From positions 2,046,001-2,110,000 of the forward strand of contig OZ218951.1 in assembly GCA_965112735.1 (NCBI GenBank): a stretch of DNA of 64,000 nucleotides, in the 5' to 3' direction. Positions 12,480 to 62,978 of this stretch are shown one piece after another. Source of the stretch: Phaeosaccion multiseriatum. Lineage: Eukaryota > Protista > Ochrophyta, other classes. Under the pieces are notes generated by a model. That model worked only from the letters and a program-made list of their open reading frames with translations. It was not told where the DNA came from and made no database searches. Numbering within the stretch: the first letter of the stretch is position 1; each line of letters opens with the position of its first letter. Both the position numbers and the translations under genes were made by a program.

Positions 12480-13721
12480 TCACCCTTGATTGATGAGATG
12501 GCTCATGCGAGCGGCCTTGGCTTCCAGGTAGCGCTCGTTGTGCGGATTGGGCGGCACCAGCATAGGAATGCGCTCCTCCACCTCCACCCCCGTGGCCCGC
12601 ATCCATTCCAGCTTGTACGGGTTGTTGGTCATGAGAGCGACGGACTTGATGCCCATGTCAGCGAGTATGTGACTCACACACCCGTAGCTGCGGGCATCGT
12701 CCGGCAGTCCGAGGGCCCGGTTGGCGTCGACGGTATCCATGCCGCCGTCCTGGAGGTGGTAGGCGGCCACCTTATTGGCGAGGCCAATGCCTCGCCCCTC
12801 CTGCTGGAGATAGATGACCGCGCCCTCGTGTTGCTTAATGTAAGCGAGGGACGCGTCCAGCTGTTCGCGGCAGTCGCACCGGCGGCTCCCCAGCACCTCG
12901 CTCGTTTGACACTGGTCATGAACCCTCAGAGCGACCTTGTGTTTGCCCCGCAAGTCTCCAGACACCATCACCACCGGCTCGTGTGTAGCCCCTGCTGCGC
13001 TCAAATGCCGATACGCACGCAGGCGGAATGAGCCCTTGTCTGTGGGCAAGTCGCACTCACCCACAAAGGTCGTGACCCCCTCCCCGCCTCTGCTGCCTGC
13101 TGTTGCCCGCCCCAGAAGGATGGAGGAAGGGACATGCGGGGTAGCGTCTCCTCTAACGGCGCCGCCCGCGGGGGTGGTGGTGCTACTACCGCTGCCGCTG
13201 CTGCTCTTGCTACCGCTGCCCTTCCGACAGCATGGGCAGCTGGTGGTGCTCAGCATGGCAGACACGCGGTTTCTCTTTCTCTTTCTAGACACACGATTCT
13301 TCGAGGGCGATGGCGGCCCTTCATCACCCCCATCCTCCTCTGCTCCGTCGCTCCACGCTCCCCCCTTCTTGCGCTTGCAAGTGGTGGTGGTGGTTATCGT
13401 CGTGGTAGTTGTTGTTGCCGCCACAGGCTCGCCTTTCTCCTCGTCCGACTGCAAGTCGCCCTTCTTGGCTTCCCCTACCTGCCCCTTGGCCCCCTCTACG
13501 CCCCCCCCCCCCTCCTCTTTCTCCTCCTCCTCTTCCTCCTCACTGCTTTGCCCACCGCTGTCCGAGATAATCCCCAGTCGCGCGTTGTTCGGCAGAGAGA
13601 CGACCCCTCCAAAGAGATGGACCTGCTGCTGCTGCTGCTGCTGCTGCTGCTTGGCCACTGGAGCTGCTACCACCGGCGCCACCTCCTTCGCCCCTGATGG
13701 TCCCTCGACTATCTCCGACAT
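12480..13721 (-). CDS. ribA: GTP cyclohydrolase II (riboflavin biosynthesis) with a low-complexity N-terminal extension
   Basis: Motifs LPTDKGSF, LRVHDQCQTSEVLGSRRCDCREQL (Zn ligands C-x10-C-x-C), YLQQEGRGIGLANKVAAYHLQDGGMDTVDANRALG, LMTNNPYK and NERYLEAKAARMSH. Confidence 0.95.
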   Translation of the reverse strand: MSEIVEGPSGAKEVAPVVAAPVAKQQQQQQQQQVHLFGGVVSLPNNARLGIISDSGGQSSEEEEEEEKEEGGGGVEGAKGQVGEAKKGDLQSDEEKGEPVAATTTTTTITTTTTCKRKKGGAWSDGAEEDGGDEGPPSPSKNRVSRKRKRNRVSAMLSTTSCPCCRKGSGSKSSSGSGSSTTTPAGGAVRGDATPHVPSSILLGRATAGSRGGEGVTTFVGECDLPTDKGSFRLRAYRHLSAAGATHEPVVMVSGDLRGKHKVALRVHDQCQTSEVLGSRRCDCREQLDASLAYIKQHEGAVIYLQQEGRGIGLANKVAAYHLQDGGMDTVDANRALGLPDDARSYGCVSHILADMGIKSVALMTNNPYKLEWMRATGVEVEERIPMLVPPNPHNERYLEAKAARMSHLINQG

Positions 13722-18061: not shown

Positions 18062-21000
18062 ATGGAGCTGCTAGATGAGGAGGTGGTCGCCTTTATGGAG
18101 AAACACTCTATCCCGCTTACATCCATGCCCCATGCCCTCGCACTCATCCGCAAGGAGCAGACCCAACAAGGCGGGCAGGACAACGCTGAAGGTGGTGGTG
18201 CTGCTGCTGTTGCTGCTCTCCATCATGGGGAAGGCGAGGAGGATGGCCACCAGTGGAGACGCTTTCTCCGAGTCCGGCCGGGACACATTGCCCATCAGCT
18301 CATGCGGCAAATCGAGGAGAAGGAGGGGACGAGCCGCAGCAGTGCTGGAGCAGACAGTGGTTGCAGCCCCACGAGACGAGATGCCCGTGGCTCGAGGGGG
18401 GTGGAGCTCGTTCCGTGGATGAATGGGAGGCCATCATCAGGTGCGTCGTGTCAGCAAAGTATATTCGTCAGGCAACATCCATCCATCCGTCCATCTAACC
18501 TAATACATCGAACCTAATGCAATACATACCCATGGAATAACGTGGAAATGACCGCAGGAGGCACATGGATCAGTGTGCCGCACGCATGGAAGGTGCACGG
18601 CTGGGGACCGCATACGGACGGGAGCGTCTTCGCCATGGACGCCAGCTCGGGCTATGCCGTTCTGGCGCTCGACCCAGGCCCCAGAGACCACGTGCTAGAC
18701 CTATGTTGCTGCCCCGGGGGAAAGATCATCATGATCAAGGACGTTATGGAGCACAAGAGGCAACTCTGGTGGCGGCGGCAGCAGCAGCAGCAGCAGCAAG
18801 AAGAGGAGAAAGGGTATGGGGGGGAGAATGACGACGACGACGACGACGAGGAGGAGGAGGAGGAGGAGGAGGAGGAGGAGGAGGAGGAGGAGGAAGGAAA
18901 GAAGAAGAGGAAGAGCCGTCAGCAGCCGCCCACTCATGGACAAAGAAGAAGGCCAGGGCTCAGGCGGCCTCTCCCTGCTGCTTGGAAGTGGGGCAGCGTG
19001 ACAGGGGTTGACGTGTCGGAGGAGCGACTGAACCTGTGTCGGAAGCTCCTGGCCAAGGCTACGGCGGGGGATGCGTCCGTGTGGGCATCGGCATCGACAG
19101 TGGGACCTACCACCTCGATCGGCGCCGCCGGAGGAGTGGGAATGGGAGGAGGAGGAGGAGGAGGAGAAGGAGGAGGAGGAGGAGGAGGAGGAGGAGGAGG
19201 AGGAGGAGGAGGAGGAGGAGGAGGAGGAAGAGGTGGAGAAGGAGGTGGACGAGGAGGTGTGTGTGTCCAGCAAGGCACGGACAAGAGCTCGAGAGATGTG
19301 TCTCCGAGGGTGCCACCCCTCACGTGCCGTCTTTTTCACGCGGACGGTCAGACCTTTGGGCGTGCAGAGAGGAACGATGAGGCGGAACAAAGACAAGCGC
19401 ATGAGCGGGAAGGACAAGCGACAGATGAAAGTCAAAGTACGGCCGGGCGTGGCAAGGGGCAGCGAGACCCTGGAGGAGGCATGAGAGTATGGAAGGGCGG
19501 TGAACATTCCGTGGGGTGTGAGCCTGGCCGGAGAGAGCGAGAGCGTCTCGTGTACCACTCCGCAGCCACCGACGAAGGAGCCGCTTGGAGAGAAGGGAGG
19601 GAGGCACCACTGGCAGCACGAGGAGGAGCGAAGAAGATGAATAAGAGCGCACGAGAGCGAGAGAAGAAGAGACTGAGGGCTCTCACCGCTGCTGCTGCTG
19701 CTGCTGCTGCTGCTGCGTATCGGAGGGGGAAGAGCAAGACAGGGAAGGAATGTTCAGCTGCTGAAACGGAGGAGGCGACGACGGGGCGAAGAGAGCAAGA
19801 GGGTGTCGTTGGAGCAGCTCAGGAAGGCGAGCTGCCCAGTGTGGTAGGGGACGGAGGGAGTGGCGAGGAGGAGGAGGAGGAGGAGGAGGAGGAGGAGGAG
19901 GAGGAGGAGGAGGAGGAGGAGAAAGGGGGGTATGGAGGCGTCGAGGCATGGCCTGTCGAGTACGATCGCGTGCTGGTGGATGCGGAGTGCACGCACGACG
20001 GCTCCATCCGACACATGGCCAAGGTGCTGGAGCAGTTGGTGATACCGCCGCAGCAGGGGGGGGTAGAGAGGGCTAGGGAGAGGGAGGAGGAGGGGGACGG
20101 GGAGGGGGAGGGGGAGGTGTTGGAGGAGGAGGAGGAGGAGGCAGGAATGCAGCTTCGGAAACCGCTGCCCCATGTGGCTAAAGGCAGGCGCTCCTTCATG
20201 TGCAGCGAGCGAGTGGAGGGCCTGCAGGCCCTGCAGAGGGGCTTGATCAGGTTGGAGGAGGCTTGCTCTACTCTGCTCTGCTCCACTCTGCTCTGCTCTA
20301 CTGTACTATCCTCTCTCTCTACTCTCTCTGCTCTACTCTACTCTGCGCTGCTCTACTCTGCTCTGTGTGTGCTCTGCTCTACTCTACTCTGCTCTTGGCT
20401 CTACTGAGCGGCTCGGCTCTTCCATGGGTAACTGTTAACTGTGGACTGAGGGGTGGGAGCTCAGCTCGGTGCTTGTTGCGGAGCAGAGCATGCCGATGAC
20501 GGTCGTCACCAATCGGGCCCCTACCGCCCACATCCACTCGCTCAACCTCTCCCCTCTCGCTCCCTCACAAATGGCAGGAACGGTTTCTCCCTGCTGAAAG
20601 AGGGCGGTGTGCTTGTGTACAGCACCTGCAGCCTCAGCCCCCTCCAGAACGACGACGTTGTGGAGTGGCTGCTCGACACGTGTCCAGAGGCGCGCCTCCT
20701 TCATGCCAGTGAGGGCAGTGGTGGTGAGGGCAGTGGTGGTGATGGTGAGGAGGAGGAGGGGGAGGAGGACCACAAGGAGGAGAGGGATCACGGTACCATC
20801 CCAGAAACCAATGGCGGCGCCTCTGAAGGCAGGAGTACGAGGGATGGTGGCAACACCAACAACGATAACCACATCAGGAACGAGAAGAAGAAGAACAACG
20901 GGGGTGGAGACGAGAGCGAGGGCTGCAGGGCTGCCACGTGGGGCCATCGGTACCCGGACCAGTCAGCAAGGAGAGCCCCGTTCCGGCCCGGGCGGCTGCT

Positions 21001-21127
21001 GAAGACCGTCCAGTTCTCACCCGACCTCGGTACCAGCGCTCTCTTCGTCGCTAAGCTCACTAAGGCGTCGGTGGAGGGGGGGGGTGTGCAGCCGCAGCCG
21101 CGGGCATATGGGCAGGCAGGGCCGTAG
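18062..21127 (+). CDS. NSUN/RsmB/NOP2-family RNA cytosine-C5 methyltransferase
   Basis: Exons 18062-18440, 18558-20250 and 20578-21127 (more internal introns possible). Motifs: MDASSGYAVLAL, VLDLCCCPGGK (motif I), YDRVLVDAECTHDG (motif IV), LLKEGGVLVYSTCSLSPLQND (motif VI), and LFVAKL at the end. Confidence 0.9.
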
Positions 21128-27805: not shown

Positions 27806-29737
27806 ATGTAGGAGCTCAGATCCAATCGAAAAGGGATGGTGACGTGACGGCTCACTTTGGAGCGAGCCTGAGATGGGACAGGCAAGCGAAGGGGAGAGGA
27901 GGAGCGAGGGAAGAGGGAAGAGGTCAGAGTTACAGATAGAGCGAAGGAAGCGGCAGATGCGCAAAAAAGTTACGAGGCGCACCCACACGCACCACCCCCA
28001 CACACGCACACACACGCACCCACGTCCGAACACACACGTAACCACACGTAAGGTACCTGTAGTCTCTTGAGGTGGCACATGAGCATGCTTGGCGTGTCCT
28101 TGATGAGGAGGCGCTTCACTCCGTCCCTCCGAGGGGCTGGCGGCTTCTTCTTAACCCCAGTCTTAGCTGCTGTCTTGCACTCCTCCTTCTCCCCCCCCGC
28201 CTCCTCCTCCGCCTCCTCTTCCTCTGCCTTCTCCTTCCCCTTCTGGACCTCATCTTCAGCAACTCCTTCGCTGCCCTCCTCCCCGTCCTGCTCTATACCC
28301 TGATGATGCTCATGCCACCCGTCTTCCTCATCGGCCTCGTCGGTCGTGCCCTCACTCTCTCCTCCTCCTTCTTCTTTCTCCCCTTCAGCTCTCTCAGGGC
28401 CTCCATCGGTATTCCAACCCTCCTCCTCCTCCTCCTCCTCCTCCTCCTCCTCCTCCTCCTCCTCCTGCAGTGCCTGTAGCTTCTCCCTCTCCAGCACTCT
28501 TGCGCACTCTTCACACGCGTACCCGTTTCCTGTCCTCTCCACGAGAAGCTCCTCGGCCGTGAAAGCGTCAAGGCAGCTGTACAAGTCCAGGCCCCTCGCA
28601 GAGAGCGGCCGGGAGGAGAGGGCAAGAGACGGGGACTCGGAGCGACGCGGAGGGGCCCACAGCCGTTGCCTCTTCTTTCCCCCCGCCCCCCCCCCACCGC
28701 CGCTGCTGCTGCCGCCGTTTCCACGACTCGCACTAGCCTTCCCACTGGTGCCTGCGCTGCTGCGCTTTGCCTCGGTCTGTCTGTCGGTCTCGGCGACTTG
28801 CTGCCCCTGCCTCGCCGCCCCCCTTCCTCTCTCATCCCTGTCCACCGTAAGTCCCTCCAGCGCTGCCTTTGCCCCTGCCTCTGTCTCTGTATCTGCCTCT
28901 GCCTGCTGCGGTGCTTGTTGTTGTGCCATCTCTTCTTCCTCTCCCTCCTTCCCGCTGCTCTCTTCCTCCTCTGCAGCGACCCCCCGTCCCTCCCTTTCCT
29001 CTTCCTCTTCCTCCTGCTCCTCCTCCTCCTCCTCCTCCTGCTCATCATCCACCACCACCGCCTCCCCCTCCTCCTCCTCCCCCTCTCTATCCTGATCCAT
29101 CCCCTCTTCAACAACAGTAATGCCCCCCTGTGTGACCAATTGCTCTCCCTCGGCACCCTGAGGCCCCTCCTGTCTACCTTCTCCCAACTCCTTCAATTCC
29201 GCTTCTTCTTCTCCTTCTTCTTTCTCCACTTCCGCAACCAATCGTAGCCTCCGCAGCTCCTTCTCCTTCTTCCTGTCCATCTTCTGCTTCTTCTTCTCCT
29301 TCTTTTCCAACTTCCTCTCCACCTTCTCCCGCTTCCTTCGCCTCTCCTCTGCCTCCAACGCCGCCTGGACAGCAGGCGAAGCAGCGCTGTTGCCGGTGGG
29401 GATTTCCAGGCTTAGACCTACAAAGTCCTCCACCCTGCAGGAGGAGTGATGGCAGGTGCTACAGGTCACCATTGAGCACAAGGTGCCTCCGAATACCTCC
29501 TTCACAGCTGTTGGTGGTAGGGCCGTTGGTGATACGGCCGTTGGTGAGGCGGCAGTTGGCGACACAGGTGTCACATCCTTATTCACAGGCTTCACAGCCT
29601 CGACAGCCGTGGTTGGTGATACAGCAACTGGTGGTACGGCAGCTACAGGAGCTGCGTGTGCGACTTGCACAGGGGGCGAAGGAGGGGTGGGGGGAGAGGG
29701 AGCGCGCGGAGACACAACAGCCGCGGCTGCATTCCCG

Positions 29738-29772
<35 letters not shown>

Positions 29773-31911
29773 ATCAGCAGGCGGTGAATGCGGCCGAGGT
29801 GGTAGCAGCGCCCCCCCTGCTGCAAGGGCAAGGCCTCCTCCAAGGCCTCCTACAGCAGCAAGGGGCACAGGGGGGGGCGTTGTCGCTGCCCTCGCCAGGG
29901 GTGCTCCATCTGCTGAAACGGAAAGGACCGTCGGAGCCTCGTCCAGCGGTTCTCCATCATCCCCTCCTTCCTGCTCTCCTCCGTCCGGGCCGACGTCTCG
30001 TGTGCTCTGCACGGCGGAAGGGGGAGAGGCGTCCTCTGTCTCTCCCTCCTCCTCCTCTCCCTCCCTTCCATGCTCTGTCTCCTTCGGTCGTGCAGCCTCA
30101 AGCAGGGAGGCCTTCCCTTCTGCCCCGCAAGTAGCCTCCTCCTCCTCCTCCTCCTCCTCCTCCTCCTCCTCCTCCTCCTCCTCCTCCTCCTCCTCCTCCT
30201 CCTCCTCCTCCTCCTGCTTCTCCTCCAGCTGCTGACCATCATCGTCGTCGTCGTCGGCCTCGATCCCCTCTCTATCCGTCTCTCCCTCGCTCGACCCGTT
30301 GGAGGGAATCGGACTGCTGGGGCTTCTTGTACCTTCGGCAAGAGAGCAAGTTGCAGCTGTAGAGCCCTTGCCACAGCCTCTTCCTCCCTCATCGGCCTGT
30401 TCTGCTGCCCTACGAAGTGCTGTTGCAGCTGCATCCTCGACCACCCCCTCCGGTTCCCCTCCTCCATCCTTTCCCATACCCTCCGTACCTGTTGGCCTCT
30501 CGCCCTTGGCACCCTTACCCCCGTCGCCGTCCTCCTTCGATTGCTCGCCCCCCCCCTCGTCGCTCTCCAGTGCCTCCTTTTGATCCTCCTCCTCGCCGCC
30601 GCCCACCCCCTGCTCGTCCCCATGCTCCTCAACACCACCACCGGCATCCTCCTCCTCCTCCCCCTTCTCCTCCTTCTCCTCCTCCCCCTCCTCCTCCTCC
30701 TCCTCCTCCTCCTCCTCCTCCTCCTCCTCCTCCTCCTCCTTCTTCTTCTCCTCCTTCTTCTTCTCCTCCTCCTCCTCCTCCTCCTCCTCCTCCTCCTCCT
30801 CCTCCTCCTCCTCCTCCCTCTCCTTCACCACGGCCTTCCACGCAGCCTCCTCCTCCTCATCCAACGTGCAGCACAAGCACATGAAGAGCTCATGGGCGTC
30901 CTGCTGATGGTGGCCCTTGAACTGCGGCCAGCACCGCTGCACAACCCGAAGCAAGCTCGACGGATTGCACACCGCCGCACCACCTGCCCCTCCTCCTCCT
31001 CCTCCTCCTCCTCCTCCTCCTCCTCCTCCTCCTCATCCAACTCCCTTGGTCTTCCTGCCTTTCTTCTTGAAGGACTCTTGGAAGTGAAGCTCGTCCCTCC
31101 CACCACGACCACCCTTGCCCTTCTTCCCACCCCCCCCACCGCCTCCGCCGCCTCCTATGATGGTGGCGTTGGTGCTACTCGTGGGCCGCATGCTGCGCAG
31201 GCACTGGTGCAGAGCCCGATTGAGGCCACCGCAACCCCCAGCCCCGCCCCCTGAGGAGTAGTCTTGGCCTTTGTAGGCCGGGTCGTTTAGAAGCGCTTCC
31301 TCGTGCTGTTGGAGGGCAACATGGAGTAGCCGTGTCTTGTACAGGCATTGGAGCGTGCTACCGAGGAGAGCAGAGGGAGAGGAGGGGGGAATACATGGCG
31401 CATTGAGGAAAAGGGAGTTGCGGGTGTTATTTAGTAAGGGGGTGGGGAGAAAGTTGGGGCGTACCACAGTTACTTAGGTGATTCCTGTAAGTCAATAAAG
31501 CCCTTCCTCCTCAGGCGTGAGACGCAGCCACAGTGAGCTCCTGATCCTGCCGACCAACCTGTTGAAGAAGCACGTGTTACCGAGGTTAAGCAGTCCGCAC
31601 GACGGGTGTTGGGTCCACTGGCCTGACCAATCGTAAGTCTCCTCGCCCTCCTCTTCCACGACATCGCCATGCTCGGGGGAGGCGAGATGGCTGCTCCTGC
31701 CCTTGCTTTTGCTGGCCACCAGTGCTGAGGCGGTAAGGTGACGGCTGCTCGAGACGGAGTAGGCGCCCCACTTCCGCACCTTCCCCTTGCGGTGAGCCTC
31801 GGCCGCATCTGTGCCTGCTTCTTCCCCCCTCTTCGATTTGTTTCCCTTACTCCGCTGCTCCTCCTTCTGCCGGGCTTTCTTGCGAGCCTTCTTTACTTTA
31901 CCTTTTGTCAT
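26472..31911 (-). CDS. Ubiquitin-specific protease (peptidase C19, USP16/45-like)
   Basis: Cys box [12 protein letters not shown]|[45 protein letters not shown]...[22 protein letters not shown], His box GGHYFAY, WVYHSDS, AQAYM|VFYER (last exon 26747-26472). Confidence 0.93.
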
Positions 31912-52459: not shown

Positions 52460-54008
52460 TCACGTAGATGGCGCAGGTGTGGGCGATGCTTGGCTGTTGT
52501 CGATATTAATGAAGACCGAAGTTGATAGAAGCCCGGTCCGCGGTGTGAAGCGCAGGGCCGAGAAGGGAGGAGAAGTGGAGAGAAGAGAGTAGAGTGAGGA
52601 GAAGAAGACTCCGCTTGAGCATGCAGTTCACTTGGGGGCTTACAGTTTGCGGGCGCGGCGGTCGCGATCATCCCCGAAGTCATCTTCATCGCCATCATCC
52701 CCGAAGTCATCTTCTTCGTCTCCGTCCCTGACACGACGCGACGATGGTGTGCAGATGGCGCGCGATGGAGATGGACAGGAGAGGAACGAAGCGCGAGGGG
52801 AGGGGCGGAGAGGAAGGTGTCAAGAAGCAGGCAAGTGTAAAGCCGGGAGAGGAGGGGACGGAGAGAGAAACCCAGGGAGGGACGCAAAGAGGGCGCGAGG
52901 GGGGAACTTACTCCTGCAGCTTGCGGGCGCGGCGGTTGCCAGAGGGCGCAGGTGTGGGCGATGCTTGGCTGTTGTCGATATAAACGAAGACCGAAGTTGA
53001 TAGAAGCCCGGTCCGCGGTGTGAAGCGCAGGGCCGAGAAGAGAGGAGAAGTGGAGAGAAGAGAGTAGAGTGAAGAGGAGAAGACTTCGCTTGAGCATGCA
53101 ATTCACTTGGGGGCTTACAGTTTGCGGGCGCGGCGGTCGCGATCATCCCCGAAGTCATCTTCATCGCCATCATCCCCGAAGTCATCTTCTTCGTCTCCGT
53201 CCCTGACACGACGCGACGGTGTGCAGATGGCGCGCGATGGAGATGGACAGGAGAGGAACGAAGCGCGAGGGGAGGGGCGGAGAGGAAGGTGTCAAGAAGC
53301 AGGCAAGTGTAAAGCCGGGAGACGAGGGGACGGAGAGAGAAACCCAGGGAGGGACGCGAAGAGGGCGCGAGGGGGGAACTTACTCCTGCAGCTTGCGGGC
53401 GCGGCGGTTGCCAGAGGGCGCAGGTGTGGGCGATGCTTGGCTGTTGTCGATATAAACGAAGACCGAAATTGATAGAAGCCCGGTCCGCGGTGTGAAGCGC
53501 AGGGTTGAGAAGGGAGGAGAAGTGGAGAGAAGAGAGTAGAGTGAGGAGGAGAAGACTTCGCTTGAGCATGAAGTTCACTTGGGGGCTTACAGTTTGCGGG
53601 CGCGGCGGTCGCCATTACCCCAGAAGTCATCTTGATCGTCTCCGTCCCTGTTGTTGGCGCAGTTCGTGAGGTCGATGGAGAAGAAACGTCACAGGAGAGG
53701 ACGAAGCGCGAGCCCGGGGAAGTGGAGGCGGCGGAGGCGGATGTCAAGAGAGGAGGAGGTGGAGAGAAGCGCAGGGAGGCGGGCAAAGTGTCGGGGGGTT
53801 GCGAGGCAGAGGAGGGACAGCGGGCCCAAGAGCAGGTGTGGTCGAATGAGGCGACAAGAGCGGGGCAAAAGATTTTTCCCCCTTTGGATGCACATGGAAC
53901 TTACTCCTGCAGTTCGCGGGCCTCGGAGAAGGTGTTAGGGACTCGGGCGGCGCTGGAGAGCACTGCGACAAGGAGCAGGGTGAAGAGAGCGAAGAGAGAG
54001 AGGTTCAT
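52460..54008 (-). CDS. Secreted 158-aa polyprotein precursor: signal peptide followed by RxL|Q-separated acidic and QASPTPAPS peptides
   Basis: Exons 54008-53905, 53647-53591, 53440-53384, 53202-53119, 52968-52912, 52727-52644 and 52493-52460. Every donor is gtaag, every acceptor cag, every intron phase 2, and the total is 477 nt open to TGA. Protein: MNLSLFALFTLLLVAVLSSAARVPNTFSEARELQEDGDDQDDFWGNGDRRARKLQASPTPAPSGNRRARKLQEDGDEEDDFGDDGDEDDFGDDRDRRARKLQASPTPAPSGNRRARKLQEDGDEEDDFGDDGDEDDFGDDRDRRARKLQASPTPAPST. Confidence 0.88.
52470..53650. repeat. Tandem repeat with a 472-475 bp unit, about 2.5 copies (two exons and two introns per unit)
   Basis: Near-identical blocks; equivalent splice sites are 472-475 bp apart. 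Confidence 0.95.
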
Positions 54009-54880: not shown

Positions 54881-55948
54881 TCAGTCCTCGCAGTCACAGG
54901 GGTGGCCATTGGCGTGCACCCACTGCTTGATGCCCTCAAAGGCCTCATTTCTCCCTCCATCCCACCTGCCTCTGGCGAGCAACCACTCCGGGCACGAGCT
55001 GCTATCCCATGGACACATGACGCTTTCGGACCGCAGCCACTGCAACATTGGTAGGCTTTTGGCGCGCGCGACGGCAATATAACAAACACCCCTGTCCCAA
55101 TCGCAGAGGTCACGAGCATTTGCATGAAGCCAGCACAGCACCTTCAAACTTCCATTCATAGCGGTAAAGAAAGCCGCATCCCGCCACTCGCTGCCTCCTC
55201 CGATCGCCGCAGATTCCAGCTTGGGCCTGACCCTTCGGTGTCTCAGAAGCAAGTCCAGCACATTGATCTGTCCCTCTTGCGCAGCTTCCGTCCCCCTGCA
55301 TTGCCAAACCCCCCAGTCGAAAGGAGCGTTTACCTCATCCGACAACAGCCACGTGAGCATGTCCACGTCCCCTCTCGTTGCAGCTAGAGTGCAAGTCCGC
55401 TCGTCCCACGGACACGGGCTCTTGTCGGGCAGGTCTTCGGAGCGGAGCCACTTGAGGATGCTTAGGCCGTGCTCAGGATTCAAGGCTGCTGCTTCGCACA
55501 CGTCCTCATCCGATACACACCCCATGCGATACAATGCCTGGCAGATACTCAGGTCCCCCCACTTGGCCACAGCACAGAATATTCTGAGACTCAACCGAAG
55601 ACTTGAGTCCAGCCAGCCATCTCTGACGGCCCAGTTGAGACACTCCACAGACTTGAGTACGCTGTGACGAAGAGATGTCACCTGCGAGAGATGAGCGGCG
55701 AAGTAGAGTCTCCGCCACCCCTTGCCCACTGCAGCCACGAAGAAGAAATGCCCCCCCCCCACCATGGCCATGACCTTCAGCATTATTTCCTCAGTCGCAA
55801 GTACTCTAGCTCGGTGTGAGAGCGTCAGGTCCTCGAGGTACGCACAACTCAGAGCAGCAGGGCCAGCGGCAGCGCTAGGTGAAGCTTCGCGTCCATCATC
55901 AGCAGAGAATAGCCTCTTAACGCCGCGCTCCTCGGCCATGAGCAGCAA
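54881..55948 (-). CDS. Intronless F-box-like plus ankyrin-like repeat protein ('HANGHPCxCED' family)
   Basis: Intact ORF (likely ATG at 55939) homologous to 16956-17876 and ending KQWVHANGHPCDCED. Confidence 0.85.
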   Translation of the reverse strand: MLLMAEERGVKRLFSADDGREASPSAAAGPAALSCAYLEDLTLSHRARVLATEEIMLKVMAMVGGGHFFFVAAVGKGWRRLYFAAHLSQVTSLRHSVLKSVECLNWAVRDGWLDSSLRLSLRIFCAVAKWGDLSICQALYRMGCVSDEDVCEAAALNPEHGLSILKWLRSEDLPDKSPCPWDERTCTLAATRGDVDMLTWLLSDEVNAPFDWGVWQCRGTEAAQEGQINVLDLLLRHRRVRPKLESAAIGGGSEWRDAAFFTAMNGSLKVLCWLHANARDLCDWDRGVCYIAVARAKSLPMLQWLRSESVMCPWDSSSCPEWLLARGRWDGGRNEAFEGIKQWVHANGHPCDCED

Positions 55949-57796: not shown

Positions 57797-58262
57797 ATGA
57801 CTCTCCGCGCCATCCTCACGGTCTTCGCCCTGCTCTTCGTGGCAGTCCTCTCCGGCGCCGCCGAAGTTCCTCGCACCCTCGAGGAGAAGGAGGCCCGTAG
57901 CCTGTAAGTTCAACTGCTCCAATCCCATCGCTCGTACTGTGCGCGCCGTTCCTCGGGCTCTCGCGCGCCGACTCTCTGCCCCGATTCCGTGTAGAGCATC
58001 AACTTTCCTAAATTGACCACCTCCCCTCCTTGTCCTTTGCTTCGCCCTCCTTCTCCCGCTCCCCAATGTCTCGGCTGCTGTCCTCCTTCTACGACATTTA
58101 ATCTCACGTCCCGCTTCTCCGTCGCGCTTCACTCCCACCCGGCAACATTCCCTTCTTTCGCCGCTCCGCCGCTTTACTTCCGAAAACAATCCGTTCGCCG
58201 CTCTGCCGCCATCATTCCACGGCTCCGCTCGCGCCTCCCTTCTCGCTCCTCGCACCTCCCTC

Positions 58263-58297
<35 letters not shown>

Positions 58298-58722
58298 TAC
58301 TCACTCTCTCTCACTCTCTCTCCTCTCTCCTCTCTCTCTCCCTCTCTCTCCCTTCCTCCCTCTCTCTCCCTCTCTCCCTGTCTCTCCCTCCCTCGCCCTC
58401 TCCCTCCCTCTCTCTCCCTCTCCCTCCCTGTCTCCCTCTCTCTCCCTCTCCCTCTCCCTCTCCCTGGCCCTTCCGCCTCTCTCCTTTCCTCTCTCTTACT
58501 CCCTCTCTCTGTCGCGTTCTTCATCAACTTCATCGACCGACGACACCACCACACAGCTATGGAAGGGGCTATTATGGCCATGGCTACAAGGGCTACTACG
58601 GTGGCAGGGGCTATGGCTACAAGGGCTACTACGGTGGCAGGGGCTATGGCTACAAGGGCTACTACGGAGGCAGGGGCTACCCCTACTACCGAGGCCACGG
58701 AAAGTATGGAGGATACAAGTAA
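57797..58722 (+). CDS. Secreted 90-aa precursor of a Gly/Tyr-rich cationic peptide
   Basis: Exons 57797-57903 (gtaagt donor) and 58557-58722 (cag acceptor after a long pyrimidine tract), phase 2. Protein: MTLRAILTVFALLFVAVLSGAAEVPRTLEEKEARSL-YGRGYYGHGYKGYYGGRGYGYKGYYGGRGYGYKGYYGGRGYPYYRGHGKYGGYK. The 33-nt repeat encodes GYKGYYGGRGY. Confidence 0.85.
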
Positions 58723-61457: not shown

Positions 61458-62978
61458 ATGGCGCAGCAGGCGACTTTAACGCCCGAGGTACGGATGTAGC
61501 GCCCTGCCTCCTATAAGATGGTGTTATTTGGAAAAATAGAGCAGAGAGAGGAATCCTTTTTTGCGCTGAGATCACGTGTGACCAGTGAGCAGCTCTCCGT
61601 TGATCACTTTTTGTCCAGTTTATGCGCCTCTCCCCCCTAAACTCGTTTCCCTCATCAACCCCAGGCGCGGCGACTCGGACAGGCTCTGGAAAGAGGAGAT
61701 AGCTTCCTCACTGTGAGAGCGCTGATTGGGAAGCTCATCGCCAAGCACGGCAAAGCGAGTTTGGATCAGCCTATCGATGAAGAGGGCGATTCGTCTGCAC
61801 TCTGGGCTTCAAGACATGGTCGACTGGATTTCGTGGACCTTCTGCTGCGGAAAGGGGCCTCCTTCGGAACCAGAGGCGGGCCCTTTGGAGACACGCCGTT
61901 GATAAGCGCTATCCTGTACGGGCACGATCAGGTGGTGAGGCGGCTGTTGGACATTGGAGCCCCTGTGGACCAAGCGAATGACACAGGAGCTACTCCCCTG
62001 ATGGCAGCCTCAGGAGAGGGGCACTCCACGATGGTGCAGCAGCTGCTCTCGGCGCGTGCTAGTGTCGACTTGGCCGACAAGCAGGGGTTTTCTCCGATTT
62101 GTATGGCCTCTCAGAACGGACATGGCTCTGTGCTAAGGCTCCTCATCTCAGCCCAAGCGGATGTGAACCAAGCAACTAATCGCGGGTGTACTCCGCTTCT
62201 GCAGGCGTCGCTCAATGGGCATGCGGGCACTGTACAGCAGCTCATCAGGGCTCACGCCATTATCGACAAGGCTGACATCGAAGGGCTCACTCCTCTTCAC
62301 GTTGCCTGTCAGGAAGGGCACGACGCCGTGGTGGAGAAGCTTCTCTGTGCGGGAGCACAGGTGGACAAATGTACCAACACCGGCGAATCACCCCTCATGC
62401 TTGCCGCGCAGAATGGGCACGAGGCCGTCGTCGCTCGTCTCATCTCTGCGGGAGCACGTGTGGACAAGGCTGACCCCGAAGGTTTCACTGCTCTTCACTT
62501 TGCCTGTCAGGAAGGGCACGACTCCGTGGTGGAGAAGCTTCTCTCTGCGGGAGCACGTGTGGACAAAGAGGCCAACAATGGCGCAAAACCCCTCATCCTT
62601 GCCGCGTGGGATGGGCACGAGGCCGTCGTCGCTCGTCTCATCTCTGTGGGATCCCCCATGGATGCCTCAAGAGTAGACGACCCTTCCCCGCTGGTTGCCG
62701 CTATCTGCAGTGATCAGCACAGCATTGTGCGGCAGCTCCTCTCGGCCGGTGCTTCGGTGGACAAGGCCTTGGCTGGGGCACAGCGGTGTCAGCTCGGCCT
62801 CGGCATCGAGCAGCGACTTATGGAGGCAGCAGCAGCCTTCTTCCGGTCCCAAACCGCGCTGGACCTCATGCGAAGGACGGATAAGACCTTCGGCAAGGAG
62901 AGCGGAATCCTGCCGCTGGAGAGGCCCGGGCGGGTGCAGAGCGAGACGTGGGAGAGCATGGCGGAGGAGATGAGCTGA
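61458..62978 (+). CDS. Canonical ankyrin-repeat protein (about 10 repeats)
   Basis: Exon 61458-61487 (MAQQATLTPE) splices in frame to 61665-62978. Repeated G.TPL..A...GH..VV..LL..GA.VD units. Confidence 0.9.

Follow-up and report, generated by a model that had tools for sequence, protein, structure and literature searches.

Does a tandem repeat for which a mechanical list of open reading frames (ORFs) records no gene encode a secreted protein, and, if so, what kind of protein would it be? This question is raised by a locus on the minus strand (54008-52460) of a 64-kb stretch of Phaeosaccion multiseriatum DNA (contig OZ218951.1), which is referred to here as the window. The original prediction, made from the letters of the sequence, placed at this locus a gene of seven exons and six phase-2 introns encoding 158 amino acids, and held that the ORF track misses it. 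In the present study, the gene model was rebuilt by script from the reverse complement of 54150-52300. The exon lengths were reproduced exactly (104, 57, 57, 84, 57, 84 and 34 nt), giving a coding sequence of 477 nt that is translated into 158 residues plus a stop, and the gene is indeed absent from the mechanical ORF list. The observation behind the prediction was confirmed, the gene is probably real, and its features point to a secreted precursor of short peptides, for which the arguments are set out below.

In the rebuilt model, exon 1 (53905-54008, 104 nt) opens with an ATG in a CACC context, encodes a signal-peptide-like hydrophobic stretch, a short propeptide and the motif RELQ, and ends in phase 2. 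Two types of unit then alternate. The acidic exons comprise exon 2 (53591-53647, 57 nt), which encodes a short acidic unit with a Trp, and exons 4 (53119-53202) and 6 (52644-52727), which are identical, measure 84 nt each and encode a long acidic unit; all three end in RRARKL with a split Leu codon. The Pro/Thr/Ser exons comprise exons 3 (53384-53440) and 5 (52912-52968), identical again at 57 nt each and encoding QASPTPAPSGN followed by RRARKLQ, and the terminal exon 7 (52460-52493, 34 nt), which encodes QASPTPAPST and closes with a TGA stop at 52462-52460. All six introns begin with GTAAG, end with CAG and lie in phase 2. Introns 1 (53648-53904, 257 nt), 3 (53203-53383, 181 nt) and 5 (52728-52911, 184 nt) start with GTAAGT, and introns 2 (53441-53590), 4 (52969-53118) and 6 (52494-52643), each of 150 nt, start with GTAAGC. 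The stop of exon 7 overlaps a phase-2 GTGAGT (52460-52470, minus strand), a relic of the donor of the unit and a possible seventh donor whose use would lengthen the protein; no further unit-like exon was found downstream of exon 7.

Several features indicated that the spliced frame exceeds what chance would produce. The minus strand of the window contains 40 GTAAG pentamers, of which 6 fall in the gene span against about 1 expected, and all six of those between 52300 and 54150 are the donors of the model. On the coding strand, the pyrimidine (C+T) content reaches 71% in the introns and 50% in the exons. Moreover, because every intron is in phase 2 and starts with GTAAG, any intron left unspliced gives an immediate in-frame TAA, so that the frame exists only after splicing. 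The two junction types were particularly informative. The 3' ends of the two exon types, which encode RRARK, are homologous, yet the donor is placed differently: in the acidic exons the Leu codon is split as CT/C and the Gln (CAA) is supplied by the next exon, whereas in the Pro/Thr/Ser exons Leu-Gln (CTG CAG) lies wholly before the donor. The same Lys-Leu-Gln therefore arises from different nucleotides at the two junction types, which would be hard to account for unless selection acts on the spliced protein and on the proposed cut site in it. A second gene nearby (57797-58722, plus strand), whose homologous leader exon likewise closes with R-x-L on a phase-2 GTAAGT intron, is a further argument for the spliced frame. 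The duplication of one unit accounts for the regularity inside the repeat, and the independent junction types therefore number about three rather than six. Taken with this discount, the gene model is, with good confidence, probably a real one. The GTP cyclohydrolase domain in the window, which was looked at for calibration of the intron signals, is a single exon.

The tandem repeat itself was recovered by Tandem Repeats Finder at 52466-53638 with 2.5 copies, 96% matches and a unit of 472 bp (475 bp in the original prediction). Within a unit, an acidic exon and a Pro/Thr/Ser exon are each followed by an intron, of 150 nt and about 181 nt respectively, and each long acidic exon holds a 27-bp internal duplication. 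The end of exon 1 together with intron 1 is homologous to the end of the Pro/Thr/Ser exons together with introns 3 and 5. The identity of exons 4 and 6 and of exons 3 and 5 stands beside 7-8 differing positions per pair among the 150-nt introns, and the sole difference in exon length, 27 nt, is in frame. Furthermore, DNA contigs from four runs separated two haplotypes with 20 single-base differences, 19 of them intronic (12 in the unique intron 1); the sole exonic one, at 53936 in exon 1, replaces Asn25 by Asp. Between 53690 and 53935, 6 of 130 nt in intron 1 distinguish the haplotypes, a divergence of about 4.6%, and the flanking 5' leader carries no differences. These data suggest that the DNA sample is diploid and highly heterozygous. 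The pattern leans modestly to constraint on the exons. Since all introns are in phase 2 and the units are symmetric, duplication, loss or skipping of units keeps the frame, and the 472-bp repeat would have grown by such frame-keeping duplication.

The predicted protein has a hydrophobic core at residues 3-17 and small residues at 18-20 (Ser-Ser-Ala), followed by a 13-residue stretch that ends in Ala-Arg-Glu-Leu. Six R-x-L-Q sites were counted, as had been stated (RELQ once, at residues 31-34 close behind the predicted signal peptide, and RRARKLQ five times), and Gln follows every Leu, so that each predicted product would start with Gln as claimed. Likewise, the alternation of three acidic units with three QASPTPAPS units was recovered, one per exon; the first acidic unit is the shorter one with the Trp, the other two are identical, and every internal unit ends in RRARKL. 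The acidic units were said to lack Ser, and this was borne out in the spliced translation. For the 22-residue acidic unit, the count of 15 Asp/Glu was right, but an additional Arg-Asp before each spacer had been overlooked. The net charge after the leader is -17, distributed in sharply segregated blocks; cutting after each Leu would yield pieces with charges of -3, +4, -11, +4, -11 and 0. The C-terminus is not hydrophobic, and thus no membrane anchor or glycosylphosphatidylinositol (GPI) anchor is suggested. Plastid pre-sequences of ochrophytes carry an aromatic residue after the signal cleavage site; the residue after the likely signal cleavage here is Ala or Arg, which argues against plastid targeting.

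What would such a protein be? There is about an even chance that the locus is a lineage-specific nuclear gene for a small, fully disordered, secreted pro-protein, in which each exon supplies one peptide cassette and cleavage occurs after the Leu of R-x-L. The signal peptide would be removed near Ser-Ser-Ala (residue 20), the pro-protein would be cut in the secretory pathway after the Leu of all six R-x-L sites, and the basic remnants would be trimmed away, much as silaffins lose their RRIL/RRNL tails. Six peptides beginning with Gln, three of them polyanionic and three short and of the Pro/Thr/Ser type, would then reach the cell surface or the medium. Two known systems make processing at the spacers plausible. 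In diatoms, Sil1p has an RXL motif behind its signal sequence, the repeats of the frustulin, cingulin and silacidin precursors end in RXL, mature silaffins lack the RRIL/RRNL tails, and a specific endopeptidase has been proposed for RXL (PMC4557024); the statement that RxL is the processing motif of diatom silica-protein precursors agrees with that review. Like the silacidin precursor of Thalassiosira pseudonana and Sil1p of Cylindrotheca fusiformis, the present protein combines a predicted signal peptide and a nearby RXL with a repetitive precursor in which RXL closes the repeats. In oomycetes, which are stramenopiles too, RXLR proteins are cut after the Leu before secretion; their motif, which has variants such as RXLQ, resembles PEXEL of Plasmodium, RxLxE/Q/D (PMC11754927). 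The present protein shares with them an R-x-L that is placed 11-13 residues behind the predicted signal peptide and within a disordered stretch, and both RELQE (residues 31-35) and RKLQE fit RxLxE/Q/D, the former within the range of about 40 residues behind the signal peptide (PMC11754927). The leader site, and also that of a neighbouring paralogue (57797-58722, plus strand) with a homologous leader, fit the oomycete rule, and cleavage after Leu is therefore favoured at all six sites. The likeness ends there: behind the motif the protein has no effector domain and consists solely of two short low-complexity units in repetition, five further copies of the motif lie far from the signal peptide, and the organism is a free-living alga with no known context of delivery to a host. 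As for function, a polyanion of the extracellular matrix or cell covering is the most likely role, possibly as a counter-ion for the cationic peptides of paralogues; Ca-binding peptides, or acidic spacers around glycosylated Pro/Thr/Ser peptides, would also be compatible, and a silica-specific factor is probably not what the gene encodes.

A number of observations weigh against this reading and have to be set beside it. No spliced joint was seen in the four runs that hold the locus; these runs come from one sample, and their contigs of up to 254 kb, with introns covered and no joints, show that they are genomic DNA. A search limited to RNA sequencing (RNA-Seq) libraries, with exon 1 and the 5' leader as the query, matched no run. 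Relatives were sought, and none was found with the leader or the exon-4 frame: the leader, inside a stop-free reference of 119 residues, had no match among 5.8 billion proteins (65-208 residues); a two-sequence leader profile retrieved no relative from 1.84 billion representatives; and the open frame of exon 4 gave 596 pattern matches in metagenome contigs, none of which was confirmed. The absence of relatives is weakly established, as the searches used the leader and exon pieces. Moreover, the youth of copies 2 and 3 is shown by introns 3 and 5, between which only 2 positions vary, and exons 2 and 4 differ by four non-synonymous changes, which leaves the conservation evidence modest. One low-depth contig of one run (X3; depth 13 of 66) carries a frame-shifting 1-nt deletion in exon 4 at 53151, explicable either by an error in assembly or by a rare broken allele. 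The signal-peptide call was made by a rule of thumb, from the hydrophobic core and the small residues behind it. In addition, cleavage of oomycete RXLR proteins appears to be limited to sites close behind the signal peptide (PMC11754927), and five of the six R-x-L sites here lie further in than the leader site. The sole match of the leader profile, a 369-residue internally repeated protein, was rejected as unrelated. A feature search of the Atlas with the leader gave scores of at most 0.69 and only generic small secreted pre-pro-peptides, with which no relationship was apparent.

The positional limit on RXLR-type cleavage gives some weight to another explanation, in which the gene is real and its secreted product stays whole and serves the cell covering as a single disordered polyampholyte; acidic blocks, each of net charge -11, would alternate with basic blocks, and Pro/Thr/Ser linkers might be glycosylated. 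The net charge of -17 after the signal peptide and the sharp segregation of charge blocks are what such a protein would have. In plant arabinogalactan peptides, motifs of the kind of [Ala/Ser/Thr]-Pro runs undergo hydroxylation and glycosylation, and the protein contains such a run. Plant arabinogalactan and hydroxyproline-rich peptide precursors give rise to short secreted Ala/Ser/Thr-Pro peptides, often with an N-terminal Gln; the present precursor resembles them in its Ala/Ser/Thr-Pro motifs and differs in having several copies per precursor and no C-terminal GPI-anchor signal. Against an uncut polyampholyte, the same basic R-x-L spacer stands strictly at the end of each unit, which is the layout of a processed precursor, and two paralogues whose cargo is unrelated both have R-x-L at the end of the leader. 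This explanation is considered unlikely, and it is narrowly the best placed of the alternatives.

The spacers also raise the question of which protease would cut them. A furin/kexin-type subtilase could cleave after RRAR or at dibasic pairs, with the acidic blocks as spacers and the Pro/Thr/Ser peptides as product, or the reverse. RRAR (R-x-x-R) as well as Arg-Arg and Arg-Lys pairs occur in all five internal spacers, and RRAR is also a furin/kexin-type site, so that R-x-L is not the sole possible cleavage rule. Repeat precursors with dibasic sites are, furthermore, a recognised class in fungi (PMC7329392, PMC6339444), and the present protein is like the fungal Kex2-processed repeat proteins and the dibasic neuropeptide precursors in being a small secreted precursor with several near-identical cores between basic sites. 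Those precursors, however, use Lys-Arg or Arg-Arg, and Kex2-processed repeat proteins have at least three repeated cores between such sites. In the present case, five spacers carry Arg-Arg and RRAR, but a lone Arg, without a dibasic pair, is found in the leader site (Ala-Arg-Glu-Leu) and in that of the paralogue (Ala-Arg-Ser-Leu), which leaves R-x-L as the sole motif common to all sites. The conserved Leu-Gln behind the basic run would also be left without a role under dibasic cleavage. The cores differ as well, being polyanionic or Pro/Thr/Ser-rich here, and the lineage is another one. Cleavage by such a subtilase is judged improbable to nearly the same degree as an uncut protein, and cleavage after the Leu of R-x-L is still preferred.

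It is less probable still that the locus is non-functional, being either a young tandem repeat that keeps splice-like signals by descent from a leader-type exon or a decaying, unexpressed paralogue. The lack of an RNA match and of a homologue, the 1-nt deletion in the low-depth contig and the fact that much of the regularity stems from the duplication of one unit speak for it. On the other side stand a start codon, a signal-peptide-like leader and three independent junction types, all in compatible phase; frames that are intact in all copies, with exon length varying in frame; and a last unit closed by a stop and lacking a spacer. Neutral decay would not be expected to leave such a combination.

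The placement of the organism bears on the last alternative. The ORF for GTP cyclohydrolase II at 12480-13721 (minus strand) is matched best by sequences of brown algae, Chrysoparadoxa and Tribonema (64-70% identity), and in a maximum-likelihood tree of this one gene it falls within that group as sister to the brown-algal sequences with support of 90/86, below the tool's threshold for a firm node. An exact look-up of the ORF gave no record, and the Atlas returned bacterial clusters only. By that one gene, the organism, an ochrophyte, groups with brown algae and not with diatoms, and nothing links it to silica. The enzyme is of the stand-alone kind, with a 220-residue N-terminal extension without detectable domain, and belongs to a stand-alone paralogue group apart from the fused RibBA type (brown algae, Chrysoparadoxa, Tribonema). 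Silacidins contain numerous phosphorylated Ser residues, and their phosphorylation is essential for activity (PMC4557024). The specific reading of the original prediction, a precursor akin to the silacidins that would template silica or calcium carbonate, is very improbable: a repeat precursor whose RxL sites are predicted to release Asp/Glu-rich peptides does recall the silacidins, but the acidic units have no Ser, the nearest relatives by one gene are not diatoms and no sequence similarity was detected in the searches with the leader and exon pieces. Without Ser in the acidic units, phosphorylation is unable to supply charge. The likeness lies in the Asp/Glu-rich units, three of which are delimited here by the six R-x-L sites; the differences from silacidins and silaffins also include the longer RRARKL spacer, the two alternating unit types and the provision of an exon of its own for each unit. 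The term silacidin-like may be kept as an analogy of layout; membership among the silacidins is not supported, and the biomineral link drawn earlier is weak.

The neighbouring paralogue lies 3.8 kb away in divergent orientation and consists of two exons separated by a 653-nt intron. Its leader exon (57797-57903, plus strand, 107 nt) encodes a signal peptide and a propeptide ending in Arg-Ser-Leu, whose Leu codon is interrupted by an intron in phase 2 that starts with GTAAGT. The second exon (58557-58722, plus strand, 166 nt), read by eye from the sequence, encodes a cationic peptide of 54 residues, rich in Gly, Tyr, Lys and Arg and built of repeated GYGYKGYYGGR-like units, followed by a stop. 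Over 34 residues, the leaders of the two genes share 58% identity (reciprocal tblastn E 2e-5), and their DNA aligns at about 78% over 59 nt. Both follow a common pattern of signal peptide, Val-Pro-x-Thr and Glu-Ala-Arg-x-Leu, ending on a phase-2 GTAAGT intron, and with this homologous first exon and phase-2 intron the acidic gene belongs to a local family of precursors that share a leader; the cargo of the paralogue's second exon is unrelated to it. In the 64-kb window, no further leader copies beyond these two genes and no other occurrence of the RRxRKL spacer were found, nor was an upstream motif of more than 18 nt found to be shared by the two genes. At 58270-58480 (plus strand), the intron of the paralogue is taken up by a long CT/CA microsatellite and by pyrimidine repeats of the CTCTCCCT type.

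The opposite charges of the two cargoes invite a broader and decidedly speculative proposal, which we regard as rather improbable. R-x-L-directed processing of secretory polyproteins would be an older ochrophyte trait rather than a diatom speciality, and exon-cassette genes with one common leader exon would make oppositely charged peptides (polyanions from the present gene, Gly/Tyr/Lys/Arg polycations from its neighbour) that assemble outside the cell as a coacervate-like adhesive, wall or mineral-templating matrix. Even on the more modest reading of a cassette precursor cut after R-x-L, the locus would have several implications. If it is expressed and processed as predicted, RxL-spaced polyprotein precursors, so far known from diatom silica proteins, would occur in an ochrophyte lineage beside the brown algae, which would support the existence of a secretory RxL protease common to stramenopiles. 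The gene is also a compact substrate for finding that protease, as its 138 residues contain six sites. Its design is also a clear example of how a peptide repertoire may grow by exon duplication, and such genes are missed entirely by ordinary ORF-based annotation. Among secretory repeat precursors, it stands out by having one peptide per exon and all introns in phase 2, and by its occurrence outside the diatoms.

The window has a G+C content of 57-62%, and an Rfam search of it returned nothing. A 1000-residue ORF at 27970-30972 (minus strand) contains poly-Glu and no Pfam domain, and long poly-Glu (GAG/GAA) runs occur in many open frames (2346, 19146, 26684, 30213, 60364 and others). A gene of the NOP2/RsmB-F methyltransferase type at 18542-21124 (plus strand) is detectable only as two pieces of its domain (profile positions 2-37 and 126-165), set apart by long poly-Glu coding-like runs, and is probably heavily split or insertion-bearing. 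Ankyrin-repeat ORFs are located at 54881-55948 (minus strand), between the two peptide-precursor genes, and at 61713-62978 (plus strand), where they form a strong multi-repeat array.

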